From the NCBI GenBank assembly GCA_907165135.1, contig OU015567.1, forward strand, positions 4,340,001 to 4,404,000: 64,000 nt of DNA, read 5' to 3'. The translations under genes were made by a program, and so were the position numbers. Below are positions 28,869 to 42,500 of the stretch, piece after piece. This DNA is from Oikopleura dioica (lineage: Eukaryota; Animalia; Chordata). Each line of letters opens with the position of its first letter. Within the stretch, counting starts at the first letter, position 1. Under the pieces are notes generated by a model. The model saw only the letters and a list, made by a program, of their open reading frames with translations, was not told the origin of the DNA and made no database searches.

Positions 28869-30216
28869 AAAATTGATACTATTTTTTCCTTGTATAAAAC
28901 TCACCTACTTTCCTGTATGATTTTAACTACTTTCCTTCGCAAGTTTCAAAGTACGCTTCTTATCTTCTTAAAAATACGAAAAACCCTGATCCCAAATACC
29001 GAAAAATGTCTTTCTTTCTGTAGCTACCCAGACCAACGACTTCTATTTATGATTAAATCTTTCGATAAAAATATGCGTCTTCCTCGATTTCATAGCGTAA
29101 AAATGAGTAATTCTCCTTTTGAAAGGGTAGATTTGCTCGATTTTCGATTTTTCATGGTTGAAATATTCCGTTGAATTGAGCGAGCTAAAGTTAAGTGTGA
29201 TGAGACCATCGAAGAAATAAAATAAAGATGCCAGCGCAGCTCTGAGCCTCGGCCCGTGATGGAGAGTCGCTTGAGCGTCCTTTGATGCTCAATTTCCGTG
29301 GTTTTTCAAGAAAGTGCGCAGCAGGGGCTCAACTTCCAACGCATCCGTCAGCTCGAGAAACAGGTACTTTTCCATGCACACTATTCTTTATGATAAAAAC
29401 AGCGATAATTTCAGTACGTGCATATAATTTTGCTAATTTTGTCTTAGAACGCGGGACATGGATTTCAATTTTAGATACAGATGTAATTGATCTTGGTTGT
29501 TTTGACTTGAAAATTAAGTTTTATATAACTCGTAGTAATAACTTGTAAATTAGAAATTTATTTGTTTATATTTCTGGCCTTCCCATTCAAGTTGATTGAT
29601 TGATAATATGCTGATTTTGTTGTGTTAAAGATTATAACATCAATAAATACTCTTGCGACTGCCAGCAGTGCCAGCTGAAAGTTACATATCACAGGGAAAA
29701 TTTCAATCATAAATTTGAGATTAAAACAGTTGCCGGTATAAGTTCACATGGTGTCGCTGGCTCTTAGCATAATCAAGTACGTGTATCTTAGAAGAATATT
29801 CATGTGCCCCTCTAGGACTGTAGTCTCTTTCGTCAGCATATCTTTCTTCATCTCCCCATCTCATGAATCCTAATTTAATCAGTATTACTGACGTGAAATG
29901 CATGACTCACGACGGTCGTAACACTCCTTTCACACAGCATATCTCCCCTTTTGCATCAAGCCATCGTCATCGTAAAAAATCGAGAGAATGCTAAAATGGG
30001 CAAAAACAAGGCGAAAACGGAAATCTCATAAACCAACCGTCGAGGATTTTTCTTCCATTTCGTCCGGGCTCACGAGACAATCAATTTACATTAGCGCTGA
30101 ATATTTCTTGAGCCTTTATTCAAGTCCCTTATTTCTCAAAATCTAACTCTTCAATCCGCCCCGCCCCGAAAGATCTCCAAATTTCCGGGTCCGCGATTTT
30201 CATTATTCAATTTAAG

Positions 30217-33200
30217 TACTTCCGAAGAGCTCCAGTCGTCCAAAGAACTCTCGCCACTGAGTTACTTTCAAGAAGATGAAAGCACACGCGCCTGGGGCGA
30301 CGAGCTTAGCGGAGATCTTCTCTACACCATCATTCTCAGACGAGTCAGATACTCAAAGAACTCGGATGAAGGCTTACAGTGGGAAACTCAAAAGGTAATC
30401 ACAATTGCTTTCATAAAGTTTTGACACCCTCAGGTTCGCCTGCTGAAAGCTGGAAGTCTTGAACGACTCGTCGACCACCTTGCTGCTGCTTTTCTCCACG
30501 ATGATGTCAACTTCTTGTCTATATTTCTCTCAACCTATCGTACTTTTGTCACTCCCCTCGAGGTGAGAAAGGTCCATCTTCCCTCCTCATCGTTTAATTC
30601 AGGCTTTGGATATGCTTATCCTCCGCTACGAAAATTTGTCCAACGAAGAAACGGCCAAAACACTCGCTCCAAGCGTCGATTCCAAGGAATCATATTCCAA
30701 GTCGGATTGCGAAGCCATCAAAGCCTCCATTCTTCGCGTTATGGAGCTCTGGATTGAAAGACATCCAGAGGATTGGCAACAGCCGCCAAAATATGTTCTC
30801 GTGCAGCAGACCCTCAAATTTTGTAATAAATATAAGGTAAGTTGAAAGACGAAGAAATCAATTTGAAAGTTGATACCTTAGTCGGAGACAGAAGATCTTG
30901 AACGCAAGACGCGAAAAACGCTCCACGATGCTCGACGAAAGCAAAACAAAAATGTAAGCCCATTATCACTCGCTCCAACAAAAGAAACCGACCTGGATAG
31001 AACTTCTGTAAATAAGGCACGGCTTGAATAACGAAAGAAATAAGTTGAAATTCTGAGACGTAATGCCAGCTTTTCAATCTTGACGAAACAGTATCTATGG
31101 CGAAATGACGCTTTAGTATCTTTCAATTTCAAACCCTTGAATCAAGGATGCTGCTTTATTTTTCCTCCGCCACATGTCCGAAAGCGACATCGCCAAAAGT
31201 CTGCTTGCTTACGACGTCCGTCTCTTTCGCCGCGTTATTCCTTGGCAATGTCTTGGATCTGTCTGGAGCCGGCGGGGTACGGGCGCTGAAATCTCAACCG
31301 TTAAAGCAACTGTCAAACAGTTCAATCATGTTGTCTATATTGTCCTCGCTACGGTTTTGTCGCCCTGCTTGAGTGTCAGTCAGAGGGCGAAAATTGTCGA
31401 AAAGGTACACTCTAATTTAAATGAAGAAATGGAGATGCTTTAGCCGGGTCTCTTCGCGGGATCTACAATTGAGAGTATTTTACTCCTGATTGAATACTCT
31501 CTTCACCCACCTCTTTTCGACCTTCCTTTTTCTAAAACTCCTCCATAAATCCGTTTTTAGTGGGTAAAAGTCTCCGAAGAAAGCCGCGCGTTGAAGAACT
31601 TTTCCTCCCTCCGAGCCATTCTTTCTGGTCTTCAAACTCACGCCGTCTATCGCTTGAAGAAAACCTGGGAAGCGGTTCCTGAGCCTGTCAAGAAGAACTT
31701 CGACAAGCTTCACGACGAAATGAAGTCAGAATCAAAGTCTGATCATGAAAGCTCAAGTGTTCCGTATCTCGGGACTTTTTTGCATGATTTGATGATGTTG
31801 GGTACGTTTTCATTCGTACTTTACTGATAATAATCATGCTTTTTAAGATACGGCCCATACAGATCTGCTAAAAGGCTTGATTAACTTTGAGAAGAGAAGG
31901 AAAGAATTTGAGCTTTTAACGATGATTTCTCTTCTTCAAATGGGATGCGAAAAGCATGAAAAACAACAGCCTTCTCAAGATTTTGAGCAATTTATTTCTC
32001 TTATTCAACCGCTTACTGATGAACAAGGCTTCGAGGTAAGCTACAACTGATATTCCTTGATGATAAACGGCAAATTTAGCTGTCCCAAATGGCTGAAGGC
32101 GGAGGAAAGTCGCTAGAACAAGAGCCTGTGAAGTGGGGTTCCCTCCTTCAGCATAGTTTCAGCACTTTGATGGACGATTCTGATTCCGACACCATCTCCG
32201 AGCCCCATCCGAAAATGGCCTCAAGCGCGTTGCTCGACCTAAAGTCTCCCCGTATTAGTACCGTCTCTCACAACAACAACTCGTCGAATCCGAGTGGCCT
32301 TGCCTCGCCCACCAACGCTCGTCTAAATTCATCCTCGACTCTTCCCCAAAATACGAGCCAATCCTAGGTCTAGGATGGGGGGTGATCGCTGGAGATCCGA
32401 AATGAGGCGCTCGAGATGAATCACCGATGAGTGGAGCGCGGGTTGTTTGGATCTCCAGAGCGCGGAGATCGAAGCTCGATCTCCAAATGAATCCCAGGGG
32501 TTCTGTCGATCTCCAGTTTTCGGTGATCGGAGCTCTGAATTTTCTCGAGCATGGATTTTTCTCGATTAAATTCATATTTTGCAGAGACTTTGCGGGTCAG
32601 TATCTCAGAAAATAATAATTTCTAATGCTAATCTTCAAGAAATTATCGCTCACCCACCGAGCTGAGTCTTTGGAAATTGTAACCGAACCAATTTTAAAAT
32701 TATGTGATTTCAAGTGTTCAAAAATTTTGAAAACCATCTTATTGAGAAAAATACTCGAGCAGAGATAGTAAATAGTACAGTTTTTATCCAAAATTACAAT
32801 CCATGCACTTGATTTGACAAAAGATTTGAAATCTACACTGGAGAATAAGTATTGCCTGAGATTTTTAAGTTGATCCGGCAGTCGCTTCTGATATCAGTAG
32901 GCTGGCAGAAGATTGTTTTAAAGTGACTCATCCGACTTCCGGGATAAAAAATTTTTGGATCTCCAAGAAGTGGAGATCGAGAGTGGTGATCGATCACCGC
33001 AATTTCGGGGTGGAGATCCCGCGGATCTCCACGCAATCGGAGATCCAAACAACCCGCGCACCACTCATTGGTGATTCCTCTCGAGCGCCTCATTTCGGAT
33101 CTCCGACGATCACCCCCGATCCTAGACCTAGAGCCAATCTGCGTCTTCCATAAATTATGTGATCGTCAGAATCACCGTGCAGGATCCGTTGATCGATTTA

Positions 33201-33850
33201 AACGGCGTCAATTACAGATGTATCCGTGTATCAGAACATGATCGCGTCAAATCTGTCTTGGCACTTGGCCTCGCGAAGCATAATTTAATCCACGAGCTTC
33301 CGTCCTGTTGGAATTTGATTCAGAAGCTGAAGAACAAAGGTAATTTCTTAATCGAAGGCTAATGTGTTGAATGAACAAGTGTTCCTCAGGGCCCATCACA
33401 TGATCTCCACATTCTCACAATATGTTTTAGAGCTGCCCCTGCCCGACAGCACAAATGTTTTTCACGCAATGGACAAGTCTCTCCCAGACGGGCAGCTGGA
33501 ATTCATTCTCAGAAGAAAAACGCATGACGAAATTCACGAGGCCGAGAAGCTCCAGAGGCAGAAAAAGTCGAAGCTTTACGGAGCGCAGACGGCTACTGTT
33601 TCCGGGATGACGATTCCTCCTTCTCTTCTTTCGCCTTTGCCGGGGAAGGCTCAGGTAAAGGTCGAGAGGAAGGAGTCTGTAGCGCAGAAGATAGGATCCG
33701 TTTCTATGGCTAACCTAGGAAAGGTAAGTTATCCTCAAGAAAAGTCAAGCTTATCAATTTTTTCAGGAAGAAACAGCGAAAAACGGCAGCTCTTCGGTGA
33801 AATCCAAGTCATTATCAACCATGACAAGCATAACTCGAACAAACAAGTGA
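30217..33850 (+). CDS. RalGDS/RGL-family Ral guanine-nucleotide exchange factor (REM, CDC25, RA domains); 5' end uncertain
   Basis: WGDELSGDLLYTIILRRVRY, REM (LKAGSLERLVDHL...FLSTYRTF), CDC25 (KNFSSLRAILSGLQTHAVYRLKKTW, VPYLGTFLHDLMML, GLINFEKRRKEF) and RA domain (IVRITVQ...NYRCIRVSEHDRVKSVL...LPDSTNVFHAM). Confidence 0.9.
32364..33131. mobile_element. Non-autonomous TIR element (768 bp, ~100-bp TIRs starting CTAGGTCTAGGAT, 8-bp TSD) inside RGL coding sequence
   Basis: TSD AGCCAATC at 32356-32363 and 33132-33139; long, closely matching TIRs with GGAGATC/GATCTCC subrepeats. Confidence 0.92.
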
Positions 33851-34558
33851 CCTCATCTCTTTCTGTGTATCTGAAAACTACTGAATCCCAAAACACCAAT
33901 TTGTGACCTCACAAACCAGATAAGGCAGGTTTCAAACCTCCTGTCTATTTATTATTATTAATTTTATTTCATTTCTATTTTTACCTTTTCATCAATTTTC
34001 AACTCGTGTTTATTGCGATCTTTTTTTCTGTAAAATTCGCTTAAAATCATCAACCCATCTTTGCCGGTATCTTTTTATTAATATTATTATAATATTATAC
34101 CTACGACTAATTTATAACTGGAAAAAACAGGCTCCTTCTTACAGCAGGTATGCAGTATCTATTAACTTAACTGAGCCATAATCCAGGAAGGAGGCTTATC
34201 ATCGCACCGGTGCTTTTTTCGCCAAAAAAATAACTCTCATTTAACTTTGAAACTTCTTCTTTTCTGTGAAACTTTCATCTTTCTTCCTTCTCACTCCATT
34301 TCTCCCCAAACTGAAACCTAACTGAAATAACAAATAAACAATTCCAGAGTTCAAAATATTCAAATTATTTCATCCAAACATCTTTTTCTGTGAATATTTT
34401 TGAAGAACCTAACTTATCACTATTTCTGCCGGTACTGAAAACCCTGAAGTACGTACTGATCTTACCTAAAGTTTGCTTTTCTTTTCTCATTGCTTTCATT
34501 TGGAATATCATTAAATGATTATTCGAATTTCAACCCTTTTACGTGTACCTTCCCAAGA

Positions 34559-35544: not shown

Positions 35545-38515
<2,971 letters not shown>

Positions 38516-39571: not shown

Positions 39572-42500
39572 CATGGGAAAGTCAAAAAAGAAAGCTGCAA
39601 AGAGAAATTCCCCGATTGACCAATTCGAAGTCATCGATAATTCTCAATTAGAGCAATTCCAATCGGTAAGGGTTTGGTTTTTTCTAGTACTTCTTTTGTT
39701 GTTTACACTTATTTTCAAAAAACCGATAATAAACGAAAAAATGGACTTTTGCTTTTGCTGCAATTCGCAAAGCTCGCAAGAGAGAAAGATTGAGAAATTT
39801 TTGGCGCAAAATGAGGCTTTTATTCATCCACGATCGGTTTTTCTTGAAGTAAAGATATCCTTTTAAGCTATCGCTTAAGGAGGGGGTCGACGAGAATCGG
39901 GATTTCCGTGACCAAAAATGCGGGAAAAGATAAGCAAAATCTGGATTTACGGGTGAATAGCAAAGGGTTGAAAAAATTAACCGGCGAGAAGTAGAAAAAA
40001 TTTTGGCCAGAAAAAATCGGTCAAAAATGCCGTCAAAGTAGGGGCATTTTCATAAAAATGCACCAAAAATAGTCATTTTTTTTACATTTTTCTTAATATC
40101 ACCCCCTAAATCTTATTTTTATTGAATGATTTTAGGCTCAACAGATTCGTGAGGATCTGTAGATTCCAAAAATATAAGATTCATACACAGACCATGTGTA
40201 TACGCGAAATTACGATCACCCCTGAAAAAATTCTCGTCGACCCCCCCCCTTAATTAACTAGAATAATAAAAACAAAAACAAAGTGCAATTTTCTTTTTAG
40301 AATGTGTCTAGATTCAGAAAAATTTTAATCTCTGTCTTCAATTTTGTTTCGAATATAATATAGATATAATTATATTGTTGAAGACAGAGATAAAAATTAT
40401 TCTGAATCAAGACACATTCTAAAATAAAGATGTCCTTTTTTGAATATTTGTTTTGTATTTATTGTTCTAGTTTATTTTCGATGATATGGAGAAATCAAAG
40501 AAATTGATATCCTTTTATCATGCTCGTAATTACTCTGCGTAATATATTAATAATAATATTATAAAGAAATAATAAATTATTTCAATTTATCGGCAAACTA
40601 ATCGATTAAAACGAGATATTTTTGATATCTTTTGAACTTCGAGCAGAATCGAAATCATTAATTTCAAGCATGAGTTGATTCCAATATTCGTTATCAAATA
40701 TTTACAAGTCCGTAAACATCCTTTTAGAAATGCCGGTTTCGCAAGAGTTGCATCCAGGGCGATTTCGACGCTGCAAGGAAAATGATCGAAGAGAATCCGT
40801 CGATCGAGCGAATTGTCGACAAATCCGGCTGGAATGGATTACACCACGCAGCCGCGGAAGGCCATTTTCCGATAGTTGAACTGTGTATTCGGTCAAATTT
40901 CAAGGTAGGGCGAGACTTTCTGTTGGGAAAATAATCCTCTACTTCAAGATCAACGCAAGGACGAAGGAAGATGAAACAGCCTTGTTGTTGGCGTCGAGGA
41001 ACGGGCATCAACATGTCGTTGATTATTTGATCAAAGAGAATGCCGATGTCTTTGCCATTTGTAAGTTAGCAGGGTCCTTTCTTTGTTACCTCTTTTTCAG
41101 CAAAAAGCGGACAAAACGCGCTCTCCGAAGCAGCAAGAAAGAACCGACCCCTGATCACATCTTTGCTTCAAGATGCGCTTCAAACACCACTGGCTTCCAG
41201 CACACCACGCGAGGAGAAAAAGAAGAACTCGGAAGACTTTTCTCTTGTTGGGACAACTAATTCAGACGTCGATTATATAAGGTTATATAAGGCGAACAAG
41301 ACATCTTCTATTCTATCTGTTAGAATAGAATAGATATGTCTTCTTTTAGAAGATATATGACGCAAACTTAGAAGATAAGTATTCAATTGTTTTTCTAGGA
41401 AACAACTTGCTGAAGCGAAGCAAAAACTGACGGACAAAAACAACGAAGTGACAACCTTAAAATCCGAAATCATCGAGCTGCACAAAGAACTTGACCTGCG
41501 AACTGAACAAATTGAACATATGAAGGGTCATTTTTCCCGTGAAGCAGCTGAGAAGGAAATAATGATTACGGTATGATTTGGCTCTCATACTCTCTTTGAA
41601 TTGGAATTTTTGTTTAGGAAATAAAGTCAGATATTGATTTGGTTTCCTCTGACGTTGAACGAACTAATGCCTTGCTTGAGACAGAGACAAACTTCAGGTA
41701 TTTTTTGGTTGAAAATTATCATAACGAAAAATCTGGAAACTTCGTCCAAGCTGTGGTTTGTTATATTTTCCTCCACCAACATCTGTTAATATCCGGTCTG
41801 GAAAGGACGAAAAATGCCAGAAGAAGTCATGCCCATTCGTTTCCATATTTTAGAGAGTCGCTGGAGGAGGAGAATCGCAAGCTGATGGACATCCTGCTCC
41901 GACGAGAAGAGACAATAAAAAGACTCGAGGTCCGGGCTCGCAATGCTCTAGAAATCTCTATCAGAGCCGACGACTACATCAAAAGTCACTCCTCAAGTTC
42001 GGGCTGAAATTTCTCTCTTCTTCACTTTTCTTCTTATAGCACTTCTTTTCTTAGTAGTCTATCTTTTCCTTCTCTTTCTTTTCATCCCTTTTTCTTGATA
42101 CGAACAGTTAGAATCCAGCAATAAGTCGCTCGCTGCCGAAAAAGAAGAACTCCACAAGCAAGTTTCAGACTTGCTAGCTTCCAAAAAGAATAGTTATCCC
42201 GGTAAGTTCATTTTTAATTACGATCAAACCAACGCAATATTAAAATCATGATATTATCATAGTTTCTTCAATTGTTTACGAAAAACAGAAAACTAATAAA
42301 TTTTATCTAAGAGCTTAAAAAAGAGAACAAAATGTTACGGGATGAACTTACCGATTCCCAAACGCGCAATCAACTTCTCGAAGATAAGGCCAAAGAATGG
42401 AAGGCGAAGCTTTTATCAGATGAGCCTGTGAAACGAGCAAAAATAATAACCCCGGCTGCGTCAGGAGATAATGAGATGATGATGGCTGCGGAAGCGTCAC

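Follow-up and report, generated by a model that had tools for sequence, protein, structure and literature searches.

A coding exon of an RGL-type gene is interrupted by a 768-bp TIR element in the Okinawan reference haplotype of Oikopleura dioica, and the same exon was found uninterrupted in marine metagenome DNA. The element is a non-autonomous cut-and-paste DNA transposon of a young, multi-copy family, and the only canonical pair of splice sites that it offers would join the two halves of the exon through an in-frame stop codon. The RGL copy is a candidate intron, not a demonstrated one, and may be just a broken allele. Judged from the sequence, the likeliest reading is that of a truncating insertion allele rather than an established intron, and we give it about an even chance.

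The interrupted gene and the inserted element

The host gene lies within the 64-kb window (the whole stretch of 64,000 nucleotides that was analysed) and has the RalGDS/RGL architecture, with RasGEF_N, RasGEF and C-terminal RA domains found by Pfam on separate exons (Table 1). The same order, RasGEF_N-RasGEF-RA, occurs at the loci of the relatives described below. Introns were placed from open frames and homology to these relatives, and introns of 40–50 nt are seen among them. The 130-nt intron at 31017–31146 can be read as GC-AG, or as GT-AG in a register 9 nt upstream. The element is located in a linker rich in Ser; the VIVR that opens the RA domain follows 19 nt further on. The earlier note had placed it between the CDC25 and RA domains, which agrees with the Pfam domains on the flanking exons, and had read the empty site as NTSQS-ASSINYVIVR, a frame that was reproduced here.

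The description of the insertion in that note as a 768-bp element with TIRs of ~100 bp and a TSD also holds. The element ends begin CTAGGTCTAGGAT... and the arms are 94% complementary over 93 nt, or 88% over ~122 nt when gaps are admitted; outside them stand two perfect copies of AGCCAATC. A 26-nt probe taken from the end matches the window twice, once in each arm, against 0 matches expected in 100 shuffles. In the predicted RNA fold of the element (z = -20), the arms form a stem of ~95 bp that begins exactly at 32364/33131, with GT 32368 and AG 33131 inside it and the TSD copies at its base. The arm regions have a G+C content of 0.53 and flank an A+T-rich core of 0.34. The motif GGAGATC/GATCTCC is found in the arms, and 11 of its 17 occurrences in the window fall inside the element.

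The possibility that the element is coding sequence or a known RNA was rejected, as its short ORFs have no Pfam match, transposase remnants included, and the element itself matches no Rfam family. Because of these negative results, and because neither a second copy nor an autonomous partner is found within the 64-kb window, the element is classed as non-autonomous. Regarding its superfamily, 8-bp TSDs are made by hAT, P and Zisupton-like elements, and a YARNG-type terminal motif is usual for hAT. The TSD is 8 bp long here, with AGCCAATC on both sides and the boundaries fixed by other copies, which fits a hAT, P or Zisupton-like element; the ends are unlike the usual hAT motif, since they read CTAGG and show no YARNG-type terminus in either register.

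Other copies of the family were found in a marine metagenome DNA run, in which the depth reaches 23–59 inside the element versus ~7 in the RGL flanks (3–8x). In contigs of these copies, agreement with the reference ends exactly at the limits of the element, before 32364 and after 33131, and unrelated flanks follow; the family pieces in the run are 94–99% identical to the RGL copy. Pieces of the element family, again with other flanks, are also present in a plankton metatranscriptome. The excess of internal over flank depth and the copies with other flanks make the family multi-copy, the identity of its pieces makes it young, and the element boundaries must be right, because the contigs of other copies diverge exactly there.

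The ends are symmetric (CTAG/GT...AC/CTAG), so that in either orientation a GT starts at base 5 and an AG closes the element. Extrapolating from this one copy, canonical splicing of any member of the family would leave 4 + 8 = 12 nt, in frame, a scar that would do no harm in two insertion phases out of three. The RGL copy lies in the third phase, in which the scar would read TAG.

Table 1. Features of the RGL-type gene and of the element inserted in it, with positions in the window
Feature	Position	Strand	Basis or remark
RasGEF_N	30606-30845	+	Pfam
RasGEF	31174-31443 and 31591-31827	+	Pfam
Intron	31802-31847	+	Open frames and homology to relatives
Intron, 44 nt	32036-32079	+	Ordinary GT-AG (GTAAGC...TTTAG), upstream of the interrupted exon
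Interrupted exon, upstream part	32080-32363	+	Ser-rich linker with conserved motif GSLLQHSFSTLMDDSDSDTISE; ORF; motif common to relatives
Candidate GA donor	32355-32356	+	Adjoins left TSD; with AG 33132-33133: 779 nt out, -1 aa, stop-free
Left TSD copy, 8 bp	32356-32363	+	AGCCAATC; its first base opens a codon (AGC CAA TC.)
Non-autonomous TIR transposon, 768 bp	32364-33131	.	Inverted ends, perfect TSD, no coding capacity
Left TIR	32364-32456	.	Starts CTAGGTCTAGG; 93 nt, 94%; weaker match to ~32485
In-frame TAG	32365-32367	+	Element bases 2-4; ends the protein read from unspliced RNA or from RNA with a donor at 32368 or beyond
Candidate GG donor	32367-32368	+	With AG 33132-33133: 767 nt out, +3 aa (SQSYQS), stop-free
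Canonical GT in left arm	32368-32369	+	Sequence (CTAG/GTCTAG); inside predicted stem
Right TIR	33039-33131	.	Ends CCTAGACCTAG; 93 nt, 94%; weaker match from ~33011
Two adjacent candidate acceptors	33130-33133	+	AG 33130-33131 (element end); AG 33132-33133 (right TSD start)
Right TSD copy, 8 bp	33132-33139	+	AGCCAATC; single copy in empty-site contig
Interrupted exon, downstream part	33132-33339	+	RA domain start (SQSASSINYVIVRITVQDP...); Pfam RA; tblastn to relatives
RA	within 33132-33338	+	Pfam, E = 6e-5
Intron, 91 nt	33340-33430	+	GT-AG; downstream; also in empty wild haplotype
Intron, 44 nt	33724-33767	+	Open frames and homology to relatives
Stop codon	33847-33849	+	

The empty haplotype, related loci and transcripts

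The uninterrupted exon is still present in the wild. In the same marine metagenome, a 699-nt DNA contig (depth 7.21) follows the reference over 32072–32354 and then over 33131–33530, skipping 776 nt. Nine letters at the junction fit either side, and the duplicated 8-mer is present in one copy, which defines an exact empty site; a search for such a site in other haplotypes, as the earlier note had proposed, thus gave a positive answer. All of the RGL flank depth in that run comes from this contig, and no contig of the run connects the element with the RGL flanks.

The flanks of the empty haplotype differ from the reference by ~3.4% (23 in 683 nt), so it may come from another population. Within the interrupted exon, all 14 differences listed between the empty and filled haplotypes are synonymous (10/10 in the upstream half and 4/4 in the downstream one), as are 8/9 of those listed for the exon before it. 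The linker and RA exons are, as far as such comparisons tell, under purifying selection in this lineage. A filled haplotype free of decay fits a very young insertion and a retained function equally.

Orthologous loci from three more distant lineages, recovered from ocean metagenomes and with 50–60% protein identity in this region, were compared with the Okinawan gene. The element is absent from all three. In each of them the V codon of VIVR is split by a phase-1 GT-AG intron, which is absent from the Okinawan empty haplotype. The idea that the element marks an old intron position was rejected, because this intron shared by the relatives lies 19 nt downstream and the empty haplotype has none. 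In addition, the intron at 33340–33430 is missing in 3/3 relatives, and that at 31017–31146 in both lineages whose loci reach so far upstream (the L006 and L011 groups). Because introns differ in this way between the Okinawan and related loci, the gene shows the fast intron turnover known for O. dioica, a species in which introns are gained and lost extremely fast and the source of the new ones is unsettled. The median intron of the Okinawan assembly is 49 nt long, and ~11% of its annotated introns are non-GT/AG (PMC8008620).

The gene is transcribed in wild animals of this lineage, since contigs of the plankton metatranscriptome hold its spliced 5' exons, including the splicing of a 39-nt intron near 30393–30433, and its 3' end (33765–34001). 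None of the contigs of this metatranscriptome covers 32080–32363 or 33132–33340, or crosses the junction. From two bulk poly-A RNA runs of 2026 that carry the same species label, a single read per run fell on the 4.6 kb covered, presumably because the runs come from another lineage or because the gene is not expressed there. Protein searches returned nothing from this lineage, whether annotated or derived from transcripts, that spans the site: a search with the last exon against all representatives gave only four short metagenome ORFs, an exact look-up of two ORFs of the window gave no record, and the 95-aa linker exon retrieved only relatives at 50–59% identity. A metagenome scan for a pattern made of the empty site and three predicted spliced junctions gave 0 matches, and so did a scan with the element's end.

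Splicing routes and the fate of the interrupted gene

Because the left TSD copy starts on a codon boundary, bases 2–4 of the element form an in-frame TAG. Splicing from GT 32368 to AG 33130–33131 would take out 764 nt and leave a 12-nt scar, made of the 8 nt of the TSD and CTAG, which reads S-Q-S-stop (TCC TAG). In both unspliced and canonically spliced RNA the stop comes before the RA domain, and the last ~194 residues would be lost. Among the G-N...AG pairs near the ends, only GG 32367 or GA 32355 with AG 33133 are in frame and stop-free. Both of these candidate donors have a poor context, with no consensus at +3 to +6, and GG lies one base before the GT. The three outcomes calculated in the earlier note were all obtained again, namely 764 nt removed with an in-frame TCC TAG for GT32368-AG33131, three extra residues (SQSYQS) for GG32367-AG33133 and one residue fewer for GA32355-AG33133. 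An exact cut of 776 nt exists only in non-GN-AG registers, such as AG32356...AG33131. To these options can be added a route that the earlier note had missed, from GT 32036 to AG 33131, which uses canonical sites only and is in frame and stop-free, at the price of 92 linker residues. Rescue of the frame is thus predicted to need a GG or GA donor, a non-GN-AG exact cut or the skipping of the linker exon.

In the truncating reading, the recent cut-and-paste insertion in the coding exon of the RGL-type gene of the Okinawan reference haplotype would cut the protein short. What is made would keep RasGEF_N and RasGEF but lack the RA (Ras-binding) domain, or the transcript would be open to nonsense-mediated decay, and the allele would be hypomorphic or null for Ras coupling. 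It might be tolerated through its youth, perhaps through heterozygosity, or through the dispensability of the gene. This reading is favoured because the insertion is young, is absent from the sole wild haplotype read and leaves a stop at the preferred sites, and because many fresh insertions must hit exons by chance in a genome so compact. The intact downstream exons, in which the listed differences are synonymous, fit a very young insertion; the intact, purely synonymous RA exon is nevertheless no less in keeping with a retained function than with youth, which counts against truncation. The ~11% of non-GT/AG introns in the assembly (PMC8008620) also speaks against it and, by the same token, for the main rival, the possible, although somewhat unlikely, case that the element is a newborn non-canonical intron. 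A plain truncating allele, with no need of rescue, is the null reading that was missing from the earlier note.

As a newborn intron, the element would be removed in frame by GG32367-AG33133, by GA32355-AG33133 or by the exact 776-nt cut, and a near-normal RGL would be made. Stop-free in-frame routes do exist, larvaceans are without the minor spliceosome and have an unusually modified U1 snRNA (PMC13326754), and the MITE-derived non-canonical introns of Fritillaria are efficiently removed (review PMC11282704). The predicted stem of the arms, moreover, would join the TSD copies and mask both the GT and the first AG, and the flanking exons carry synonymous differences only, among those listed. 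The sites themselves argue the other way: the GT one base downstream of the GG donor has the better U1 pairing, neither candidate donor has the consensus positions noted above, the acceptor has no T-rich tract and the Fritillaria YAY signature is absent. A wider proposal, which we regard as rather doubtful, is that the symmetric-end family makes introns in either orientation, each leaving the 12-nt in-frame scar, and that a permissive spliceosome rescues the RGL copy by moving the donor back one base to GG and the acceptor forward by two, or by cutting at the stem base. If true, a non-canonical intron would here be caught at its birth within a signalling gene of a chordate, and a choice of 1 nt would settle whether the RalGEF is full-length or RA-less.

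Such a choice is also the core of a different and improbable suggestion, put forward in the earlier note beside the frame-preserving intron, in which carriers would make both the TAG-scar form (RA-less or decayed) and the in-frame form in meaningful amounts and a choice of 1–2 nt would tune the coupling of RalGEF to Ras. The sites are indeed close together, GT32368 adjoining GG32367 and AG33131 adjoining AG33133, and where splice sites are weak, neighbouring ones are commonly used side by side. An evolved regulatory role is implausible, however, for so young an insertion, which is missing from the wild haplotype read and from all the relatives. The chance is smaller still that the linker exon is skipped from GT 32036 to AG 33131 and the RA domain thereby kept. 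Despite its canonical, in-frame and stop-free sites, this route would have to compete with the 44-nt intron, which we expect to be spliced co-transcriptionally before the 3' end of the element is made, and the part lost carries the motif conserved in all the relatives. Finally, that the element is merely misplaced in the reference assembly is hardly credible, since the 8 bp that stand once in the exact empty site are perfectly duplicated around the element, the signature of a real transposition.

Comparison with known transposon insertions and introns

Fritillaria and many protists are on record as having introns born from transposons, and no report of such introns in O. dioica was found in the searchable literature; a class of such introns in this species would matter if shown. 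An element that is young, lies in an exon and has a known empty allele provides material for watching the spliceosome at work on a fresh insertion. The RGL copy is a sharp test in this respect, because splicing at its canonical sites would run into a stop, and the frame would be rescued from non-GT donors only.

The introners of Micromonas, Aureococcus, Polarella and others (Huff et al. 2016; PMC9860276; PMC11282704) are likewise short non-autonomous DNA transposons with TIR and TSD, present in many copies and found in coding sequence, and their candidate splice sites come from the element end and the TSD, as at the RGL site. Both the TIR and TSD at the borders and the multi-copy family (by metagenome depth) are features that the RGL element has in common with them. 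It differs in that canonical splicing leaves a 12-nt scar with a stop, and it is a candidate intron, judged from the one copy examined. Tunicates are not mentioned in the main text of Gozashti et al. 2022 (PMC9860276).

Fritillaria borealis (Henriet et al. 2019; PMC13326754) is, like O. dioica, a larvacean without the minor spliceosome. Its introns carry TIR and TSD marks, and its spliceosome neutralises exonic MITE insertions (PMC13326754). These introns are mostly AG/AC or AG/AT, with one YAY triplet directly ahead of the 5' site and another closing the intron, and they rely on duplicated U2AF subunits found only in Fritillaria (PMC13326754). The RGL site differs from them in having no YAY signature, and non-canonical introns are a minority in O. 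dioica (~11%, PMC8008620). Splice signals of the Fritillaria type were rejected at this site, where TAC at 32352–32354 is followed by a G before the AG and no YAY triplet ends any of the 776-nt registers.

Recent exonic DNA transposons with cryptic sites in or near their inverted ends are also known from the maize Ds/dSpm alleles and from C. elegans Tc1. Through these cryptic sites the greater part of the element can be cut out, with small scars left behind, in frame or out of frame. In the maize alleles the exonic insertions are reportedly spliced imprecisely, as judged from sequenced RNA products, and Rushforth and Anderson are said to have reported in 1996 the same imprecise splicing, again with sequenced RNA products, for exonic Tc1 insertions. 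The difference lies in the products, which were sequenced there and are predicted for the RGL element.

An ordinary segregating loss-of-function insertion would likewise be seen in one haplotype and not in another; its TSD would be perfect, its family young, and an in-frame stop would stand at the start of the element, as is the case here. The RGL insertion stands apart from it in its host, since O. dioica has unusually permissive 5' splice sites and a very fast intron turnover, and for these two reasons the rescue of an interrupted exon is more plausible in this species than in most animals.

Introns that differ between lineages

The V codon that opens the RA domain (VIVR) of the host RGL-type gene is interrupted by a phase-1 intron in all three of the more distant lineages, represented by orthologous loci from ocean metagenomes (L001, L006 and L011). 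This intron is missing both in the Okinawan reference and in the wild empty haplotype, a metagenomic contig of Okinawan type without the transposon, and its position lies 19 nt from the transposon site. Either the Okinawan lineage has lost this intron or the others have acquired it. The small element found in one relative has perfect inverted ends of 17 nt (GTTTGTCTAGCAGGACA / TGTCCTGCTAGACAAAC), with the end motif repeated internally, and it looks like a MITE within an old intron.

Two further introns vary among the lineages. The 91-nt intron is carried by the wild Okinawan-type haplotype and is missing in the three distant relatives; a search for repeats within it found none. The 130-nt intron is missing from two groups of relatives, whose ORFs continue through ...TSVNK-DAAL.... 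AAGG is present at both of its junctions, and an alternative GT-AG register beginning 9 nt upstream (31008-31146), in which VNK is dropped, is also open. TIRs were looked for in this intron and none were found.

Features of the RGL locus and of orthologous loci
Feature	Position	Length	Splice sites	Location
Intron	window 31017-31146	130 nt	reads as GC-AG	
Phase-1 VIVR intron	L001:381; L006:5320-5553; L011:2646-2710; matching window 33159		GT-AG	V codon of VIVR
Small element	L001:119-284			intron directly before VIVR
Intron	window 33340-33430	91 nt	GT-AG	between ...KLKNK and ELPLPD
Intron	window 33724-33767	44 nt	GT-AG (GTAAGT...TTTTCAG)	splits last coding exon

Element family and RNA data

Contigs of the plankton metatranscriptome X1, an oligo-dT library, contain pieces of the family of the 32364-33131 element (over 32364-33018) with flanks from other loci, together with one rearranged or deleted variant. 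Their presence points either to transcription of copies at some locus or to DNA carry-over into the library. The bulk poly-A RNA runs X6 and X7, both of 2026, share their species label with the DNA runs that contain this sequence, yet each gave one read over window 29800-34400, at 90% likeness. Their source is probably a different cryptic lineage of O. dioica, and they are uninformative for the Okinawan genome. Elsewhere in the window, a 307-nt inverted pair (36385-36691 / 39923-40229), with arms 3.2 kb apart, may represent a larger element.

C-terminus of RGL

The C-terminus is set by the stop codon at 33847-33849, downstream of the 44-nt intron, and not by a longer ORF running to 33906. The protein ends in ...ANLGK-EETAKNGSSSVKSKSLSTMTSITRTNK, and the C-termini of the relatives are similar (...KSKS...PR).
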